Positions 18,545 to 60,035 are shown, numbered from the stretch's first letter. The stretch is DNA of 64,000 nt from Kudoa neothunni (GCA_964304625.1 OZ199839.1:7711166-7775165); one strand, 5' to 3'. Made by a program: numbers and translations. The notes: a model not told the origin generated them from the sequence alone.

Positions 18545-18617
18545 GTCTCCATGGCGCAATAGGTAGCGCGTTCGGCTGTTAACCGGAAGGTTACGAGTTC
18601 GAACCTCGTTGGGGACG
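18545..18617 (+). tRNA. trnN-GUU: tRNA-Asn (GTT), intact, 73 nt
   Basis: Cloverleaf: acceptor GTCTCCA/TGGGGAC, D stem GCGC/GCGC, anticodon stem TTCGG/CCGGA with loop CT-GTT-AA, T arm ACGAG-TTCGAAC-CTCGT, discriminator G. A box and B box are present, followed by T5. Confidence 0.95.
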
Positions 18618-18620
18618 AAG

Positions 18621-18636
18621 TTTTTCGATTTTTTTT
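18621..18636 (+). terminator. Pol III terminator T-tracts of the tRNA gene
   Basis: TTTTT starts 3 nt after the discriminator, and T8 follows at 18629-18636. Confidence 0.7.
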
Positions 18637-24255: not shown

Positions 24256-24291
24256 ACCGGAAGGTTACGAGTTCGAACCTCGTTGGGGACG
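24256..24291 (+). pseudogene. tRNA-Asn 3' half (nt 38-73), exact copy
   Basis: ACCGGAAGGTTACGAGTTCGAACCTCGTTGGGGACG is identical to 18582-18617 and is followed by AAGTTTTTTCGA. Confidence 0.95.
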
Positions 24292-24401
24292 AAGTTTTTT
24301 CGAGTTTTTTCTTGTACTCTGGAACAAAGTAATTATTTTAGCTCGCGTCTGCTATAGTTTAATTGGCCATTTGACAACAATTCTAACGATATATAAGTTT
24401 A

Positions 24402-34700: not shown

Positions 34701-35609
34701 CCAGGAAAAGGAAAAGATCATGCGAATGCTGATTCCATATCTAGACTGCCGAATGACGTTTCGTATTCTGCAATAATGATAAGTGGACTTCCAACAGAAA
34801 CTGTGAAGTCCGAACAAACGAATGATAATGTTACGAGTGAGGCTATCGATTGGTTGGAAAATAATAAAATGTCCAAACTACACCAAAATCTGAATGCAAC
34901 GAATTCAATCTTTTGGATGATTAGAAAAAGTTTCAAGTTGATCGATGATGTTTTGTATAGACAAATTGACGACGGTAAAAATAATAATCCTACATTGAGA
35001 TTGATTATTCCTACAAAGTTAAAAGGTTTAATACTTTCTCTGGCTCATGATGTAAAACATTTGGACATCTTGGCCATGATAAAGTAATCGAATCAATTAC
35101 GGATAGATCTTATTGGCTAAATAAACGGGAAAACATTAAAAATTGGTGTGAGCTGTGTTCTGAATGTGCAACTAGAAATAGAACTATCAACAAGTTTATA
35201 TCTGAACTTGATACGAACAACTCAAGTCATCCAATGGAAAGAATAACAACAGATATTATTGGACCTCTTGAGATAAAAAATAAAGGCAGTAGATTCATCC
35301 ATATTGTTCAGGATTATTTTACAAAATGGGCTGAAGTTTTTGCATTGAGAAACCAAGAAGTAGTTACCGTTAGCAACAAACCCATTAAAACGTGTTTTCT
35401 AGATTCGGAATTCCAAAATATATTCACACAGACCAAGGAACCAATTTCGAATCCAACCTGATACACAATATGTGTAATCTAATGGGGATTAAAATGACAA
35501 GAACGTGTCCATATAATCAAAAATCTGATGGAATGGTTGAGCGACTAAATAGAACTATTTGCGATATATTAAGTAAATGTGTGAAAAGGCATGGTGATTG
35601 GGACGAAAT

Positions 35610-38600
35610 GGGACAGCCATGTTTCGCCGGAATCACGCGTGCGCGTTTTCTCGTATATAATCGGCGATGCGCAGATGTCGGCGCGCCTATAAAATCATGA
35701 ATAAAGAAACTAGTGCTGATTTTATTATTACCAAGACGAAAAAAAATTATGACAAGCTTTTTTATAATGGGTTTTTTTATAATAAAGATTATAAAACAAA
35801 AGTTTGTCAGTATTGGAGGTGTCAAAAACGAGGATGTAAAGGTAGGCTAAGAACATTTCCGACAGAACAGATAGAGAGGTTGGATACGCTAAGTTTTCAT
35901 AGTCACTTAGTATCCGAGGAAGAAAAAAACAAGCAATTTTTCAAGGATAAAATCAAGCATATCGCAGAAAATACTGTATATCTAACTAATAAAGTGTATG
36001 ATATTGCAACTAATCAAGATGTCCAAAAATTGTCAAATATTCCAAAAAAGTCCGTTTATCAGGTGATTTGAGATATACGAAAACGAAAGAGTATTGATGT
36101 AAATCCTGAGACAAATCTTTGCGGATCGATAATGACCTTAAGGAACAAAAAATTTTGTATATACGATTCTGGATCCGAGGATAGTAATAGAATTATTATT
36201 TTTACAATAGAAGAAAATCTTTCGCACCTAAAACATTCCAAATTCTGGGTTTTCGACGGAACGTTCAAGGTTATTCCAAGAACGTTCTCCCAAATGTACA
36301 CATTAATGGTCACGTTTTTAACAAAATATTACCGTTGGTGTTTATTTTAATGACAGATAGGTCGGAGAGCAGCTATGACCATATTATTCAAATTATAAGA
36401 GAGGAAGGAAACCTGGAACTTCCCAACATTATCATAGATTTTGAGGTTGCTGCGTATAATGCATTTAAAAAAGAAACAAAACGTGATGTGCTCTTCTGCT
36501 TGTTCCATCTTGTCCAGTGCGTTAATCGAAGATTACATAAATTGGGTCTATCAAAGTGTTATCAGGAAGATAGTGAGTTTAAACTTTTTGTCAAGTGCGT
36601 TACTTCGTTAGCCTTTGTACCGAAAGATTACGTGAAGATAGAATTTGAAAAATTACTTCTACAAGCCAAGAAAATTGAAATAAAGAATTTAAATCTATTC
36701 CTAAGTTATTTTGAGAAGAACTTCATTAATAGTAACAAATACCCTGTTGAATCATGGAACGCTCATTCTCGAACCCTTAATGACATACCTCTAACCTCCA
36801 ATAATGCAGAAAGTTTCCATCGACATTTTTATGCTAGGTTTGATCAAGCACATTCAAGTCTACTAACTTTTATTAAAAATTTACAAGAGAGACAAAGCTC
36901 AGTTGAACAAGAAGCCATGTTTTATTTATGCAATCCTAATAATGATCCTTGGAGTAAAGATGTTAAATTAAAAATGGATAAGTTGAAAGCTTTTTGTGAG
37001 AGTTACCATCGATATTATGATACATTCTTCGTTCAAGCTATTTCCAAAGAATATAACTGGTATATAGAGTAACCCCACTTTCCCCTACCTGCATTTCGCT
37101 TTATAATATCTTAGTTTTTCTAATTCGTATGCTGTCGCTGATAATGAGTACAGGAAAAAATTTCTATTAAATAGAAGTTACAGGTTATCGATATTGGAAA
37201 ATGTGTGATCATATGTCATTTCCATGTATTCGCAGATCACTTGAAAAGTATCATTTTGTCTCCCTTAGATTATTTTTTAATTCTCGTTATCGCTCAATAT
37301 ATATTTTTCGAACATAAATTCAAACCTTTCCATGTAACAATTTTTTCTTCCTTTTTTCGTGTAATAAATCTTCCTTTCTTTTTAGCATTAAGTATTACAT
37401 TTTTTCTGTAAAAATATTTTCTCCGCCTTCGCATCAATTAATACTACATTTAGATTTTTCTTAGAACAAGAATTAGTCATAGAAATAGCCAATAACTGCA
37501 GGTATTTTTATAGCAACTTTTGATTACGTTTAGATTTTCAGGATACATGTCAGACCTTTCGCCAATCTTGTGACAACAATTTATTCTTACCTAGTTACTC
37601 TTGTTTTTTTTTTGTAAATTTAATCGATTTTTTATTTATTAAGAATATAACAGCGTTTATTTCCAATATTAATTGTTTTATTATTCCAAATGTTTTCACT
37701 GACCTATTATTTAATTATTTAAGTTATTACAAAATGGAATAATATAATATGAAAGATATTTATAAATTACTATAGTTATGATGTTTAAGAAAGGATAAGA
37801 ATGTTTTTAACTAACTATCTCACCTATTACATACAAAACATCTTATCTTTGACAAATTCGTTAATATCGCATGCGCCTTTAGCCACCCATGGGTTTATAT
37901 TAGGGGTTTTTTACTTTTAGCGTACGTATATAAATCTGTATTCTTGTAGTTGCAATGAAATAATTTTAGTTAATAAATTTTTTATATGGCGATTATGTTA
38001 GTTTCCTGTGTTTTATTTCAGGATAATACTTTAATCATCTATCTACAAATTGAATTTTACAAACAACTACACATACACAGATATTATTTTAAGTATTTTT
38101 TAAGGTTAATATAGATACCTTAAGCATGATTTAAAATTAATTACATGTCAAACAAATAAATTTATAATTATCCAAAAAACTCAATTTTTGTCTTTAAATT
38201 ATATGCAACATTCAATTTAAAAAAACAACATAACCGCTATTTCGCGCATATACATACATATTTATTAATTAATCTGGCATATTTTATATATTCTATATGT
38301 TAGGGAAATGGAAACGAATATATAAATTAAAATTATCGATGGAATGATAGACCTTAAAATTTACAGATCAGAATTGTAGATTCTGCTTCAATTCCTTTAT
38401 TTTCCATTCCCATGAATTTTTTTGGCTGCTGTATTGAGAAAGATAGAAGATATAACTGTATCTTATAAAATTGGCTTACCTTTATAAAATAGAAATAATC
38501 TCCCAAAAGGTTCATCAAAAAATGACTATTCCATAAATGGTAAGGCCAGCAAATTGTAAACTTAAAGCTTAGCTTTCTGGACAATGCTATAGCATAACAA

Positions 38601-40296
38601 AAATTTGATGGGAATGTTTAAACTTAATTTATTCGTAAAAATGATTTTTTTTTCCAGGTTTTAAATCTCGATTTATCTTTTTAACTCAAAACAAATAATA
38701 TTTGATTCATTATCAATTTTTTGGTGTTAACCGTAACATAAATAATTTATAACTAATATGTAATCAAGCAACTTTTCTGACTCAAATGATGAAAATATTT
38801 AGCTTCTAAAGAATGTGTTAATATAGTTGATTAAATTAGAAAAAATATAAGTTTAAGAAATAATGAATTTTTCTTTGAAAATTTCTAAATTATTCAACAA
38901 GATTTGGTAATAACTAAGTTAAGTAGTTTCCATAAATTTAAATTTGTGCCGGGGATTAATATATTAACTCCATTTAATAAATTGTTGACAGAAATTAAAG
39001 ACGATGAGTTGATGGAAGATGGCATATTCAATGGTTGAACAGGTTATAAATCCGCCCTAGAGATTGATACTATCTTTTTAAATGAAATAATGAATTTATT
39101 AGATACAATCACAAATATTACATTTCAAATGTTTAATAAAGTTAAAAAACGTAATTTTTTAATAAATAGTTGGATATAAATTTCAAAAAAGTATCACACA
39201 TTATATATTCTTAAAGCGTTCATAAAATTACAAAAATTGATCCGCGTTGCATTTTAAGTATTTTTGGACAAAGGTATAACAGGAACTCGGTTACATACTG
39301 TTCTAATCCATATAATTCACTTTATGGGGGGATAGTCAAGAATTTATTCAAAAATTGTACCCCATAAAAGTTAATAAATCTCATCGCCGGTAAATGTAGA
39401 ATTCAAACTGCAGTCTAATGATTAGAAATAATTAACAAATTATAACATTGTTACGTTCAGAGGAATTTTACTTATTAATTGTACTTGATATGGTTTATAT
39501 AAACTTAAATAATAACATAAGAAATATAGGAAACATTGCAAAAATGCATGTATGTTACTATTGTATTTTTATTAAGTGCAAACAGAATAGATCGAAAAAT
39601 TGTGGTATTGATTTTATTTTATTTTATTCTAATCATATTATTTATTATCGTTAATCATTTGTTAATGCTTGCATAATATTAAATATACAATACATATTGT
39701 ATATAATTTTTATTCCTTAACATCTTTCGTATATTATTATTAAATCTTAAGACTCAGGATAAAATTAAATTCACCCTCTCATATATATAATACTAAATGC
39801 CAAAAAATAAAACTAAAAACTTTATAAGATCGATTTTTAATGTTTATGTTTCTATTATGGTAAGTTGAATTTAAATATTATATAAAAGAACTAAATGATG
39901 CCGGCTTATAAGCGATAGTTTAGCCATCAGTGTTTATATACCACCAAAAATAAGTGATAATATTTACATACTTTTCATCAGTTTTTAAGCATTAACATGA
40001 TAACCGATTTAAATACTAATTATACAATAGGATTATGAATTTTATTTTATATTGAAAACACACAAAAGCAAATAGCAACGCATTTCATTGAGAAAAGAAA
40101 AGGTATGCATACGTGTCAACTGATCTATTATAATACACCGATTATACATTAAAAATATGAATATCTATAATACAATTGATTAATATACGTAGTTATTGCA
40201 GAACTATAATTTAAACCTACAAAAAGACTAAATAAAAAGAAACTCTAGTGTGCGCGCGCCGACTAATCTTTGCCTCCGGCAAAACTTGGCCGGTGG
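35610..40296 (+). mobile_element. FLYWCH-MULE DNA transposon 1 with imperfect TIRs, flanked by an 80-bp direct repeat
   Basis: Left end GGGACAGCCATGTTTCGCCGGA versus right-end reverse complement CCACCGGCCAAGTTTTGCCGGA. Flanks 35530-35609 and 40297-40376 match at 79/80 positions. Confidence 0.8.
35697..37072 (+). pseudogene. FLYWCH-MULE transposase (frameshifted)
   Basis: YWRCQKRGCKGRL...HSH (FLYWCH), WVFDGTFK, IIDFE, CLFHL and TSNNAESFH, spread across ORFs 35667-36071, 36132-36350 and 36335-37072. Confidence 0.9.
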
Positions 40297-40700
40297 GGAA
40301 TGGTTGAGCGACTAAATAGAACTATTTGCGATATATTAAGTAAATGTGTGAAAAGGCATAGTGATTGGGACGAAATACTTCCCCTGATTATGGTGGCGTA
40401 CAGAGCAGCGAACCATGCTGGGACTAAACATACACCTAATTTTCTGATGCTTGGTAGAGAAACATTCACCGATTGATATGCTTTTTGATAATTCGAAAAC
40501 ATTCAATAGTTTAGACAATTATATTAAAAATCTTAAAGTGAACATGAAAATGGCCCATAAATTAGCCTTCGAACATTTGAAAAATTATCAAGATAAATTC
40601 AAAAACACCTATAACAAAAAAGCATATGGTAAACTATATAATGCTGGTTCCAAGTCTATAAAAACCCTCAATTTTACCGATAATCTCAATTCCACACAAA

Positions 40701-41572
40701 ATGAAGTTGATTGAGTCTGTTGAATTTTTTTCCAACAATAAAAATGTTGTTAACTTTTGCATTGACAATGGTTTAATTGCAGATAAACAAATATGTCCGA
40801 ATTGTGGCCATTATATGATACTCGTGAGTTATGATATAATTGACAATTACATCTGGAGATGTAGAGGTGGTGGATGTCATAAAAAATTATCTCTCGGAAA
40901 TGGATCGCTTTTTTTCAAATCCAAAATGAATCTTTTCAAAATACTATTATTATTACGGTTGTGGAGCCATAATTATTCCATTAGATTGATAACTAAAGAT
41001 TTTCATTATTCCTCTCATACTGTTGTGCGTTGGACTAAAACGTTTCGCAAAATATGCGTTAAACATTACGAAAGAAATGTCACTGTTAAAATCGGCTGTC
41101 CAAGTCGAGTTGTTGAACTCGATGAAACGCTTTTAGTGAAAAGAAAAAACAACCGAGGACGCCCATTACCTGAACAGTGGGTTTTTGGTGGTATTTGCCG
41201 GAATAGTAATGGTCGAAAAAATTCGAATGTTTCATCGAGTTTGTAAACAATAGGACCGCCAATACACTACTATCGATCATTGAAAGAAGAATTATACCCG
41301 GAACAATCATCGTCACAGACGGATAGCGATCATACAGCAATTTAAACCGTTTGAGTATGAATCATTTTGTTATCAAACATGAATACCACTTTGTGGATCC
41401 CCGCGATTCATTGATACATACCCAAACAGTTGAAAATTTTTGGATGCAACTAAAAAAATGGTTACGTACAAAAGGAACCAGCATTAGAGTCCATGAATGG
41501 GATTACGTTGCAGAGTTTTTGTTTAAAAAGCAGATAAACAACACATACTCCGCCATAATAGATGAACTTTGA
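40701..41572 (+). pseudogene. Merlin/IS1595-type transposase (frameshifted)
   Basis: CPNCG..WRC zinc ribbon, VELDET, QWVFGG, IVTDG, H..FVDP...HTQTVENFW. Confidence 0.85.
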
Positions 41573-56120: not shown

Positions 56121-56838
56121 ATGTTCTTTTAAGAGTTTCTATATGTGTACACGCGAAGCGTTACACAATTGTCATTTTAATTGTTAGTGTGTCTTTTTCT
56201 TGCGTAAATTAAGAAATATGACAACTGGCGTGCTGATAGGATAATGGATGGCAAAGAAATAAGCGACGTACTCCAACAACATACTGCAGATTTGTAGTGG
56301 TCTGGTTGGGAATCACCAACACAAACCGGTCCCACAGTTTCATCCCCATTACGCTGAAATGGAGAACTGGTAAACTTACGTATCACGCACTAAGGAACAT
56401 TGTATAGGTCACGGGGGAGATACCTCTTGCCATAAGCCTCTATTCCTCTTATGGATCGGCTCATAATGTTACAAACTCTACGAGAAGGTTTTCTCAAATA
56501 GTGATAGACAAACCTGTAATTTTGATCATATTGTTTCAAAAGTAGAAGAATATTTGGTTTCGCGAAGCAATGAAGTCTCAGCTATGGTTAAATTCTCCAA
56601 TTGTAAATGGAAGCCGGGACAATCCTATTATGCTCAATGGGATGCGAATCTAGAAGCAGCTTAACGCATCTGCAACTTCACTTGTGACAATTGTCAATCA
56701 TCCTATGCACCACGGCTCATACGTGATATGATTATATTGAATACTCCTCAACCGAGAGTATAAGCCACCTGCGTACAGCAGCGCAACCCTCAATTACAAG
56801 ATGTAGTTAATGCTGGCGCTAGGCATTGGGTTACTAAA

Positions 56839-56999
56839 TGTTGCATGCATGAGATTAAATTCCATGCAAAGGATTAACATTTGTTTATTACTATGTAAAC
56901 GGGAATTAACGATCGACAGCACGTTATTCTTATTTTAGTGTTTTGAGCGTTCGTGTTGCGCACATTACTTTTTTTGCTGAAATAAAATCGATTACAACA
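56839..56999. mobile_element. Solo LTR (161 bp) with 5-bp TSD
   Basis: TGTTG...CAACA flanked by CTAAA (56834-56838 and 57000-57004), with AATAAA near the 3' end. Confidence 0.85.
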
Positions 57000-57057
57000 C
57001 TAAACAAGCCATTGCCTCCATAAGGGATGATTCCCTCTCTTCAAACACATAAGAATC

Positions 57058-58569
57058 GGAAGGGGGCACTGGTCAATGTGTGTGCGTATGTCACGCACGC
57101 GTGTTGGGATTATGTCGGAGAAACTTGGTGAACCTAAGTATCGAATAATCAAAACTTAAAGAAATTCTGAGATGCTTTTTTATCAGAATTACTTTTACAC
57201 TAAATATCACCCGGGTAAGATTTCACAATTCTGGAGATGTCAAAATAGGAAGTGTCCTAGAAAAATTTCGACGTCACCATTGGATCAAATTGATAAGCTT
57301 GAAATCGTCAAAGAGTATAATCATATTTTATTCGACAACGATATTTCAAAGATGTATTTTTCGGCCAATATTAAAAATTTATCGGAAATTAGTTCGTATT
57401 CCAACCATAAAGTTTATTCATAAACAATAAGCAGTGTAAAATTGTGCGATATACCAATCTTAAATAAAAATCACATCTACAAAAATATTCGCAATGTGGG
57501 AGAAATTCTGTTGTAGTCGATTTTACAAAAAATTTGCTGGAACTTCAAATAAAGACACTTCGTGGTCAAAATTTTTGTCTGTTCGACTCGGGGGTGGAAA
57601 CCTCAGACAATAGTACTATTGACTATTAATGAGCATCTTGAACATTTAAAAATTCAAGAGTGATGATTGCGAATGGTACTTTTAAGGTCTGTCCAAGAGA
57701 ATTTCTTCAACTATGTTACACGCGGAAAAATATTTTCGAATGTTTATCCACTGGTATACATATTGAAAACGAAGAAGGAGAGTGATTATTTGAAGACAAT
57801 AAACATTATTAAAAGTAAGTTAGATAATGGCTTCCCAAATTATATAATTATTGATTTCGAGGTGGCTGTGTATGTTTCTTTTAAGAAAGCAACAAAATCT
57901 AAGATATGCTTTTGCCTATTTCACTTTGGTCAATGTATTTTTAGAAAAATTCAAAATTTAGACTCAGTTAATGATTATAATCAAAATAACGAATTTAAAT
58001 TATTAGTTAAATGCCTTACCTTATAGAATATGTTCCACCCGAATATGTAGAAATGGAGAATCAGAAAGTTCTATGAAAATCATTTGGATTTACAAATATT
58101 AATCTTGTTTCGTTTTTCAACTATTTTGAAAAAAAAATTCTAAAAGGGACCAAATATCCTATCAAGTGCTGGAACGCGTATGAAAGAGCTATGAAAGATA
58201 TACCATTAATTTCAAACAACGCATAAATGTTTAACCGTCTTTTTCGTGATAAATTTGATCAGCGTCATCTAGGTCTTTCAACATTTTTTGAAAAATTAAT
58301 GGTTAATCAAAGTAATATTGAGAATGACATTGAATGCCAAATGCTTAATGTGACACGCATTTCCAATGCTATGTATAGACTAAAATTAGGCTCTCTTAAA
58401 GAAATTTGCAAAAATTATCGTGCGTATTATGACAACACGTCTCAACTTATAACTAAAATATGTCTGGGAATTAACTAATTAGCTTATGTATAGTTCATCT
58501 ATTATCGTTCAAAATATTGTTGTTATTTGCGCGTGCGTGTTCAAGGTTCCCCAGTTTTCTCTTTATGGT
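57058..58569 (+). mobile_element. FLYWCH-MULE DNA transposon 2 (decayed), flanked by an ~80-bp direct repeat
   Basis: FWRCQNRKC, IIDFE and CLFHFGQ motifs make it a relative of the 35697-37072 transposase. Weak TIR: AAGGGGGCACTGG versus CCAGTTTTCTCTT. Confidence 0.8.
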
Positions 58570-60035
58570 TGGCGAATAGGCATTCGGGTTACTAAATAAG
58601 CCATGGCCTCCATAAGAGATGACTCCCTTTCCTCAAACAAACAAGAATCTACGGTAAATCAACTACAACCTTCCTACAAGACAAAACGGGCAGAAAACAA
58701 GACTGTGAAGAGATTATTGCCGTCTTGTCCCAATTGTTTCATCGAACACGGACGTAAAAATTGTTCATACCGTTCGTCCAAATGCCACCATTGTCAAAGA
58801 ACGGGCCACACAGAAAAAATCTGTGGCGGAAAACAAGGTAAAAGTCTTAGTTACCAAGACTACCCACAACATACCTAAAAAGGATTTTTCCTCTAGCCTA
58901 AACAATATTGGAACTGGACAGCATAAGAATGGAATAATTCTAACCATCGAGCTCAACAAAAACAAAGGCCAAATTTTTTGTTGGATACCGGTGCATCCAG
59001 AACAATTATCGACTTATCTACCCATCTTCTAATAAGTAAACCTACGTTAACTCAAGCCTAAACAATCTTAATTACCCTTTTGGTGGGTTGCCGGCTTTCT
59101 AGATTGGGAGGATGTGTTGTGAACATCACCTTGAGAAATACGAAATTCCAATTACCGGTGATAATAACTAATCATTTAACTAGTGGTAACCTTTTAGGAA
59201 TGGACTGGATACCTCATTTTAAACCCTGCTTAATAACGAAATCAACAATGGTAATATTTCGAATGTTAGAACGTTGGACGAAAGTGCAATGTTCAATCAA
59301 CATGCGAAGTTTTTCTTCAGTACGAATCTTGGATGCTACAATCTTGGAAAGATCAAAATTCGTGTAAACACTTCGATACAACCGATAAGCTTGAAAGCAA
59401 GACCTTTACCCTTCTCCTTGGTTACAATGTTAAGGAATGAACTCAAACGGCTAGAGGATACAGGAGTCATCACCAAAGTTAATCACAGTGAATGAACAAC
59501 CCCCATTGTCATAGTGAGAAAAGACCAAAACAAACTGCGCCTTTGCAGTGACTTCCAAGCGACTATTAACCAGGCTCTCAAGGTTGACAAATATCCAATC
59601 TCCAGACTTGAAGAACTCTTAGATTCCAAGAAGGTAAACCTTTCTCGAAGATTAACTTGTCAGAGGCATATTTTCAGTTAGAATTCGACGCCGAAAGTAA
59701 GAAATTAACAACCATAACTACAATTCAAGGGCTCTACCTATTCAACCGCCTTCCCTTCGGAATCTCGAGTGCACCGGCCATCTTCGAAATAATCATCGAG
59801 CAACTAATATCTGACTTACCTGGAGTAGCAGCTTACTTAAACGATATAATAATCCCCGGAAAGACTTAGGAGGAACATCTCACCAATCTGAAATAGTCCT
59901 GGAACGTCTTACCCATGCAGGTCTAACCTGTAAGCGAGAAAAGTGTCACCTGTTCCAAACACAAGTGGACTATCTGGGTCACATAATAGATAAACACGTA
60001 ATTGGAGCATCAACGTCGAATGTAGATGCTGTATC

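Follow-up and report, generated by a model that had tools for sequence, protein, structure and literature searches.

Mutator-like elements (MULEs) generate target-site duplications (TSDs) of 8-11 bp in all groups, and of 8-10 bp in the Phantom group (PMC6446971). In Tm1 of root-knot nematodes, TSDs are 8-10 bp in 45 of 53 elements (PMC3169594), and those of Muta1 from Aedes are 8-9 bp (PMC5499845). The subject of this analysis is a FLYWCH-MULE in a 64,000-nucleotide (nt) stretch of Kudoa neothunni DNA (GCA_964304625.1 OZ199839.1:7711166-7775165), hereafter the window, which interrupts the integrase gene of a Gypsy copy and is bracketed by direct repeats of exactly 80 bp. Phantom, Muta1 and Tm1 have an N-terminal FLYWCH domain and a MULE DDE domain in a single open reading frame (ORF) of ~460-470 amino acids (aa), terminal inverted repeats (TIRs) made of short tandem units and cut-and-paste DDE chemistry; the family described here resembles them in these features, and a canonical 9-bp TSD is found in one copy from the same genome (L032) and in a homologue from another organism (L053). 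Known members, however, have TSDs of 8-10(11) bp, whereas six insertions in K. neothunni are flanked by ~80 bp. By transposase homology and architecture, the window element is classed as a Phantom-type MULE that departs from its group in the TSD.

Long target duplications are made by other systems. Bacterial IS1634/IS1549-type elements are DDE transposons of the IS4 group, whose target duplications measure tens to hundreds of bp and vary in length with each event. They share with the window element the combination of a DDE transposon and a long duplication, but they are prokaryotic, belong to the IS4 group and give variable lengths, whereas here the domains are FLYWCH and MULE and the length is fixed at 80 bp; no Pfam match to an IS4-type transposase was found in the element. 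Cas1-Cas2 and the casposons carry out strand transfers a fixed distance apart on a bent target, with a CRISPR repeat of 28-37 bp and a casposon TSD of 14-15 bp. In these systems too a molecular ruler spaces the two strand transfers and the segment between them is duplicated, but they are prokaryotic, use an unrelated integrase, span shorter distances and rely on IHF or the leader sequence for the bending. Among the non-LTR (long terminal repeat) elements, R9 of rotifers (126 bp) and Dualen of Chlamydomonas have long TSDs because the nicks in one strand and the other lie far apart (PMC9977147). These elements use target-primed reverse transcription with endonuclease nicks, whereas the MULE in the window has TIRs and no reverse transcriptase, its ORFs being FLYWCH/MULE only. 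HERV-K (HML-2), which encodes an integrase of the DDE superfamily and usually has a TSD of 5-6 bp, occasionally shows flanking duplications of 18-450 bp, confirmed by empty alleles (PMC5488345); these are rare, variable and of disputed origin, in contrast to the constant length and frequent occurrence in the present family. A search of the full-text literature revealed no eukaryotic DDE transposon with a TSD of comparable length; its coverage was partial, with Repbase reports outside it, so the result is not proof of novelty.

The two repeats, at 35530-35609 and 40297-40376, are identical at 79/80 positions, the single mismatch being G/A at 35593/40360. In the self-comparison of the whole window the pair gave a BLAST E value of 3e-33 and was the sole long direct repeat around the FLYWCH-MULE. 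As the bases flanking both copies differ on either side, the length of the repeat is exactly 80 bp. The left copy runs up to the first base of the insert (GGGAC..., GGGACAGCCATG...) and the right copy begins directly after its last base (...GGCCGGTGG; ...CTTGGCCGGTGG), so that both termini are intact and each adjoins a repeat without filler. Alignment, boundaries and Pfam matches thus agree with the initial annotation, in which these repeats directly bracketed a TIR-bounded FLYWCH-MULE. The repeated sequence is Gypsy integrase coding sequence (the Pfam rve match spans 35392-35609) and, as had also been proposed, the integrase frame continues beyond the right copy, its translation extending into 40377-40473 and reading GMVERLNRTICDILSKCVKRHSDWDEILPLIMVAYRAANH... 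and ...DWDEILPLIMVAYRAANH.... The left junction (35502-35652) is covered without mismatch by a 151-nt short-read contig (public run, Logan contigs); the run is probably from the assembly's own sample, so it gives weak independent support. Older public runs (Logan contigs) yielded the left junction only and no empty allele, and two raw-read runs bearing the species label contained nothing from the window region. Excision footprints, in the form of tandem 80-bp duplications, were sought within the window and none were found.

The genome searched comprises 40.26 Mb in three large contigs (C1-C3) and one 18-kb contig. Two uninterrupted Gypsy paralogs, at C2:10.51 Mb (L049) and C3:5.70 Mb, hold the 80 bp once with the flanks contiguous. 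In the C2 paralog, the match to the left-flank query ends at 10512133 and that to the right-flank query starts at 10512054, and a three-way alignment with L049 displays the single 80-bp copy directly. The 80 bp is therefore a true target duplication that arose with the insertion. The possibility, raised in the initial annotation, that uninterrupted Gypsy copies already carry the tandem duplication was rejected, as both paralogs are single-copy.

The length recurs elsewhere in the genome. Eleven insertions belonging to three MULE subfamilies could be evaluated, all from this genome; the window family itself is represented by six copies that are 97-99% identical (the window copy included) and two older ones (90% and 82%). 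A long flanking repeat is present in six of the eleven insertions, three times of exactly 80 bp and in two more of 80 bp within a few bases (Table 1). The window copy (80 bp) and the five others (~80 bp) thus fall outside the MULE range of 8-11 bp, and a TSD within it (9 bp) was seen only in L032 and L053. No consensus motif was found at the two cut sites. The proposal that this family makes widely staggered cuts is upheld in part: the ~80-bp length recurs at independent insertions of three subfamilies, but L032, with 9 bp, is a copy of the kind expected to contradict the proposal and four further copies have no repeat. The census supports widely staggered cuts as a recurrent, not universal, outcome.

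The sequences duplicated at L028 and L038 have no other occurrence in the genome and the one at L031 lies across a junction between two repeat families that is itself unique; these repeats are therefore local duplications, and a coincidence of dispersed repeats was rejected. Identity between the repeats is 98.75% in two young copies, whose terminal branches of 0.010-0.016 substitutions/site predict 1.6-2.6 differences per 80 bp, and 81-87% in two old copies. Such a fall in identity with the age of the element is expected if the repeats arose at insertion. The target of L031 (L031:1600-1993 and L031:6652-7050; C1:14.698-14.704 Mb) joins two abundant repeat families, of which the first has ~30 copies ending ~51 bp into the target and the second ~40 copies with variable starts 42-111 bp in, as in 5'-truncated retroelements.

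Table 1 Features of the window and insertions compared. Window positions are counted from its first nucleotide; C1-C3 are the three large contigs.
Feature or insertion	Position	Strand	Description or flanking repeat	Basis or state of termini
Gypsy integrase ORF upstream of target	35392..35529	+	Host of the insertion	Pfam rve; 84% identity to paralog C2:10511608-10512133
Target-site duplication, left copy	35530..35609	+	80 bp; stops at first base of element	79/80 vs 40297-40376
FLYWCH-MULE (Phantom-type) DNA transposon	35610..40296	+	Pseudogene, 4,687 bp	Pfam FLYWCH and MULE matches
Left terminus	35610..35645	+	GGGAC, one 17-bp TIR unit (AGCCATGTTTCGCCGGA), then subterminal GC-rich near-palindrome CGCGTGCGCG	Termini aligned across copies
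Transposase gene remnant	35697..37072	+	FLYWCH within 35667-36068, MULE/DDE within 36191-37069	Pfam, copy comparison
AT-rich non-coding 3' part	37073..40247	+	~3.2 kb, GC 0.24-0.30	Conserved among copies
Right terminus	40248..40296	+	GC-rich subterminal block and two inverted 17-bp TIR units, last bases ...CTTGGCCGGTGG	Termini alignment
Target-site duplication, right copy	40297..40376	+	80 bp; integrase frame goes on into 40377-40473	79/80
Gypsy integrase ORF resumed after target	40377..40476	+	Adjoins the 80 bp in paralog L049	Translation
Second element, left copy of duplication	56814..57057	+	Two pieces, 56814-56839 and 56999-57057	Split by later insertion
Second element, compact FLYWCH-MULE	57058..58569	+	~1.5 kb, degenerate, 32-48% aa identity to first	tblastn matches 57082-58433
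Second element, right copy of duplication	58570..58649	+	Exactly 80 bp	Alignment with split left copy
Window copy	35610-40296		80 bp (79/80)	Both termini intact
L031	C1:14.70 Mb		80 bp (79/80)	Right TIR units missing
L038	C3:2.25 Mb		78/82 bp, 87%	Right TIR units missing
L037 (older copy)	C1:1.01 Mb		62 bp clear at 81% and ~20 degraded bp	Right TIR units missing
L028 (compact 1.56-kb element, 62% aa identity to window family)	C2:5.58 Mb		80-83 bp, 94%	TIRs on both sides
Second window element (32-48% aa identity to first)	57058-58569		80 bp (right copy 58570-58649)	Left copy split
L032	C1:11.18 Mb		9-bp TSD (ACAAAAATG)	Both TIRs complete
L033, L034, L035, L043b	Various		No flanking repeat of any length within 2 kb	
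L053 (33% identical)	Other organism		9-bp TSD (ATTCCCAAA)	TIRs of tandem 16-17-bp units

The related element that the initial annotation had also credited with this length lies further downstream in the window and does have it: its right copy (58570-58649) is exactly 80 bp and aligns with a left copy that a later insertion of 159 bp (56840-56998) has divided into 56814-56839 and 56999-57057. This insertion has a 7-bp duplication (ACTAAAT/ACTAAAC) at its flanks, probably its TSD, and it is probably a DNA transposon of small size and non-autonomous type. Since this nested insertion made an ordinary 7-bp duplication, the host does not lengthen TSDs in general. The only paralog of the second element's site (C3:3.405 Mb) is indel-rich and without repeat positions ~26-85, and is not a clean empty site.

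The window element scores 31.4 bits against Pfam PF04500 (the N-terminal FLYWCH zinc finger, a hallmark of Phantom; cut-off 23.6), which L031 also passes. Against PF10551 (MULE; cut-off 27.6) it scores 25.4 bits, compared with 32.4 for L031 and 40.5 for an intact 460-aa homologue (P0001); the score lies just under the cut-off because the ORF is broken. The window copy has a TGA at 36069-36071, where its sisters read Arg (...VYQVIRDIRKRK...), and comparison with L031 and L035 shows that it has lost 1 bp after 36300. The region 37073-40247, in which no ORF longer than ~90 aa was found, is common to all long copies, and compact relatives of 1.4-1.6 kb are without this 3' part. The TIRs are imperfect, with a single copy of the 17-bp unit GGCnAAnnTTnGCCGGA at the left end and two copies, in inverted orientation, at the right end, beside GC-rich subterminal palindromes. 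The left unit AGCCATGTTTCGCCGGA pairs with GGCCAAGTTTTGCCGGA on the right, and the outermost 5 bases are unmatched. P0001 is encoded on a metagenome contig (L050), where each end has two tandem 17-bp units within TIRs of 53 bp. The homologues on L050 and on a second metagenome contig, L051, have TIRs and no TSD of any length; both contigs are short, of low coverage and may be chimeric, which makes this result uninformative. A 'flip-flop terminal hairpin', formed at the right end by a palindrome centred on TTTGCC-TCC-GGCAAA that is inverted in L033, was considered and dropped, as the terminus in L050 consists of two tandem, partly palindromic 17-bp units.

DDE transposases join both 3'-OH ends of the element to opposite strands of the target, and the distance between the two joints sets the length of the TSD. 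An exact and recurrent 80 bp with intact termini is most simply explained by strand transfer with an 80-bp 5' stagger followed by fill-in. We consider it fairly probable that a Phantom-type MULE inserted in the Gypsy integrase gene and that the insertion duplicated exactly 80 bp through such a wide 5'-staggered strand transfer on a wrapped target. The two 3'-OH ends of the element would be joined to opposite target strands 80 bp apart, after which the host would fill two 80-nt gaps; the chemistry would be that of ordinary DDE strand transfer, with only the spacing unusual. The target must be wrapped because a straight 80 bp (~270 Å) exceeds the reach of a transposase dimer and a protein-free loop of 80 bp is energetically prohibitive.

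As the ruler we favour, in line with the suggestion in the initial annotation, a single superhelical turn of DNA on the nucleosome, where each end of the element would attack a different one of two neighbouring gyres. One such turn is ~78-80 bp; sites at this distance are next to each other on adjoining gyres, and a local two-fold axis maps the top strand of one on to the bottom strand of the other. This two-fold relation is what a two-fold symmetric transpososome needs. In a toy model with B-DNA phosphates on an idealised superhelix (radius 41.9 Å, pitch 25.9 Å), outward-facing 5'-staggered phosphates 79-81 bp apart lie 31-44 Å from each other, and a 9-bp stagger on straight B-DNA gives ~37 Å. 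The idealised geometry is thus compatible with gyre-to-gyre attack, and compatibility is all that the model can indicate. Hotspots of Ty1 reportedly lie on the nucleosome surface (Baller et al. 2012, Mularoni et al. 2012). There, as in the scheme considered here, positions ~70-80 bp apart on one nucleosome would be side by side and both within reach of the integrase, but each Ty1 event uses one site and leaves a 5-bp TSD, with no event across both gyres. Given the rest of the explanation, the nucleosome is a speculative choice of ruler, to which we would give somewhat less than even weight. The full proposal is more tentative again: the ends of the element would enter neighbouring gyres of a single nucleosome, giving a TSD of exactly one superhelical turn (80 bp), and the same enzyme would give 9 bp on unwrapped DNA, as in L032. 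Copies with no TSD could represent the event of mirror polarity, in which 80 bp of target would be deleted.

Several observations weigh against this explanation. The number of evaluable insertions is small, and no intact transposase ORF was found among the copies examined in the genome. WW/SS 10-bp phase coherence, calculated for the five reconstructed targets only, was not significant (p ~0.1-0.4). L032, which is 97-98% identical to the window copy and in the same young subfamily, retains both TIRs and is flanked by a clean TSD of 9 bp; the 80-bp and the 9-bp outcome thus came from one transposase population, unless another MULE moved L032. L033, L034, L035 and L043b have no TSD, and three of them are young. 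The flanks of L035 are single-copy. L031, L034, L037 and L038 lack the two TIR units of the right terminus (~33 bp), with breakpoints that differ slightly between copies, and in L031, L037 and L038 the long repeat starts right at the truncated end. Strand transfer at both ends should not by itself leave this pattern, which would require a subsequent loss of the end; abortive excision is one possible cause of such a loss.

For the missing right TIR units, we consider abortive excision at one end, after the insertion, the likeliest reading. The MULE transposase of Muta1 leaves the flanking DNA as a hairpin (PMC5499845). A hairpin on the flanking DNA would protect the flank while the end of the element is nibbled, and copies that have lost an end cannot excise and would therefore be over-represented among the survivors. 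As for the copies without a TSD, the right flank of L033 coincides exactly with the end of a different repeat family, within a mosaic of subtelomeric repeats, and no paralog joins the two flanks of L033; later events may account for its missing TSD. Exchange of flanks by recombination between copies was considered as a cause and is unsupported, there being no match between the flanks of different copies on either strand.

L033 (C1:17.00 Mb) and L034 (C2:12.01 Mb) are 99.3% identical and each lies within ~150 kb of a contig end, in mosaics of subtelomeric repeats common to all three large contigs; neither has a TSD. The last TIR unit of L033 is inverted relative to that of every other copy.

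A ruler other than the nucleosome would leave the wide stagger itself in place. The transposase complex, as an oligomer or with a bending cofactor, might loop a target of ~80 bp in the manner of Cas1-Cas2 with IHF. The exact lengths of 80, 80 and 80 bp suggest a rigid molecular ruler, and the arrays of 17-bp TIR units could assemble multimers; a loop of 80 bp, however, is much shorter than the persistence length of DNA and would need a dedicated wrapping surface, whereas the ~470-aa protein shows FLYWCH and MULE domains only. The 9 bp in a copy 97-98% identical to the window element is also easier to obtain from two states of the target than from two states of the enzyme. We regard a ruler within the transposase complex as doubtful, with less in its favour than wrapping on a nucleosome.

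Wide staggering would not be needed if host repair made the repeats. The transposase would join the left end only, or an excised element would be captured at a break, and replication or end joining would copy ~80 nt of the target twice. Junctions made by repair typically combine a precise left end with a ragged right one and include insertions without a TSD, and both are seen here: the left end is always precise (GGGAC), the right end is ~33 bp short at slightly different positions in three of the six copies with a long repeat, and three young copies have no TSD at all. Repair should nevertheless give variable lengths, but the three base-exact cases are 80 bp, a fourth is 80-83 bp and a fifth ~80 bp, and in the window copy, L028 and the second window element both termini adjoin the repeat without filler. 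The truncated right ends, moreover, can equally be explained by later abortive excision with the flank held as a protected hairpin (PMC5499845). An origin of the repeats in host repair is accordingly improbable. The weakest alternative, an ordinary 9-bp MULE family whose 80-bp repeats go back to tandem duplications older than the insertion, to dispersed repeats, to gene conversion or to errors of assembly, can draw on the 9 bp of L032 and of relatives elsewhere (L053; PMC3169594) and is very improbable, as the paralogous empty sites hold one copy, the repeats of L028 and L038 have no further match in the genome, about the same length is found at six loci, substitutions between the repeat copies scale with the age of the element and a short-read contig covers the left junction.

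The length of the TSD is treated as a fixed signature of a superfamily and is used to classify and to find elements. A MULE clade with exactly 80 bp breaks this rule, and standard transposable-element annotators, which seek TSDs of 8-11 bp, would miss it. If the preferred ruler, the nucleosome, is the correct one, this would be the first case of a transpososome reading two gyres at once and a natural in vivo probe of nucleosome geometry, tied to the way in which integrases engage chromatin; were such cross-gyre reading true, the length of the TSD would show in what state of chromatin the target was when the element inserted. With TSDs on either side of the donor element, >90% of Muta1 excisions are precise (PMC5499845). 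Repeats of 80 bp would also be expected to allow single-strand annealing or recombination, through which the element could be lost precisely and without a scar, the gene restored and the insertion made reversible.

Two further features of the window were noted. An ORF of 181 aa with CxxC...CxxC motifs (40701-41246) lies ~330 bp past the right 80-bp copy, inside the Gypsy copy. It is without a Pfam match and presumably resembles the N-terminal part of ISXO2/IS1595-like transposases; it is probably part of another transposon nested in the same Gypsy copy. In the self-comparison of the window, a 55-bp direct repeat (96%) at 18582-18635 and 24256-24310 encloses ~5.6 kb.

The MULE population is large and diverse for so small a genome, with more than 150 scored MULE-domain matches (386 candidates) in 40 Mb, at 27-95% identity, of which a minority are without stop codons. 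At L044, L045 and L046 (C1:16.55, 16.50 and 15.55 Mb), a 250-bp fragment of the right end lies inside a segmental duplication of 3-4 kb that is present in at least three copies on contig 1. The distant FLYWCH-MULE of the other organism (L053:5627-7577, on an ENA contig) has TIR arrays of a 16-17-bp unit (CCAGGAAATTTCGTCC) in addition to its 9-bp TSD, and adjoining it is a second MULE-domain gene, of 856 aa, between perfect inverted repeats of 185 bp.

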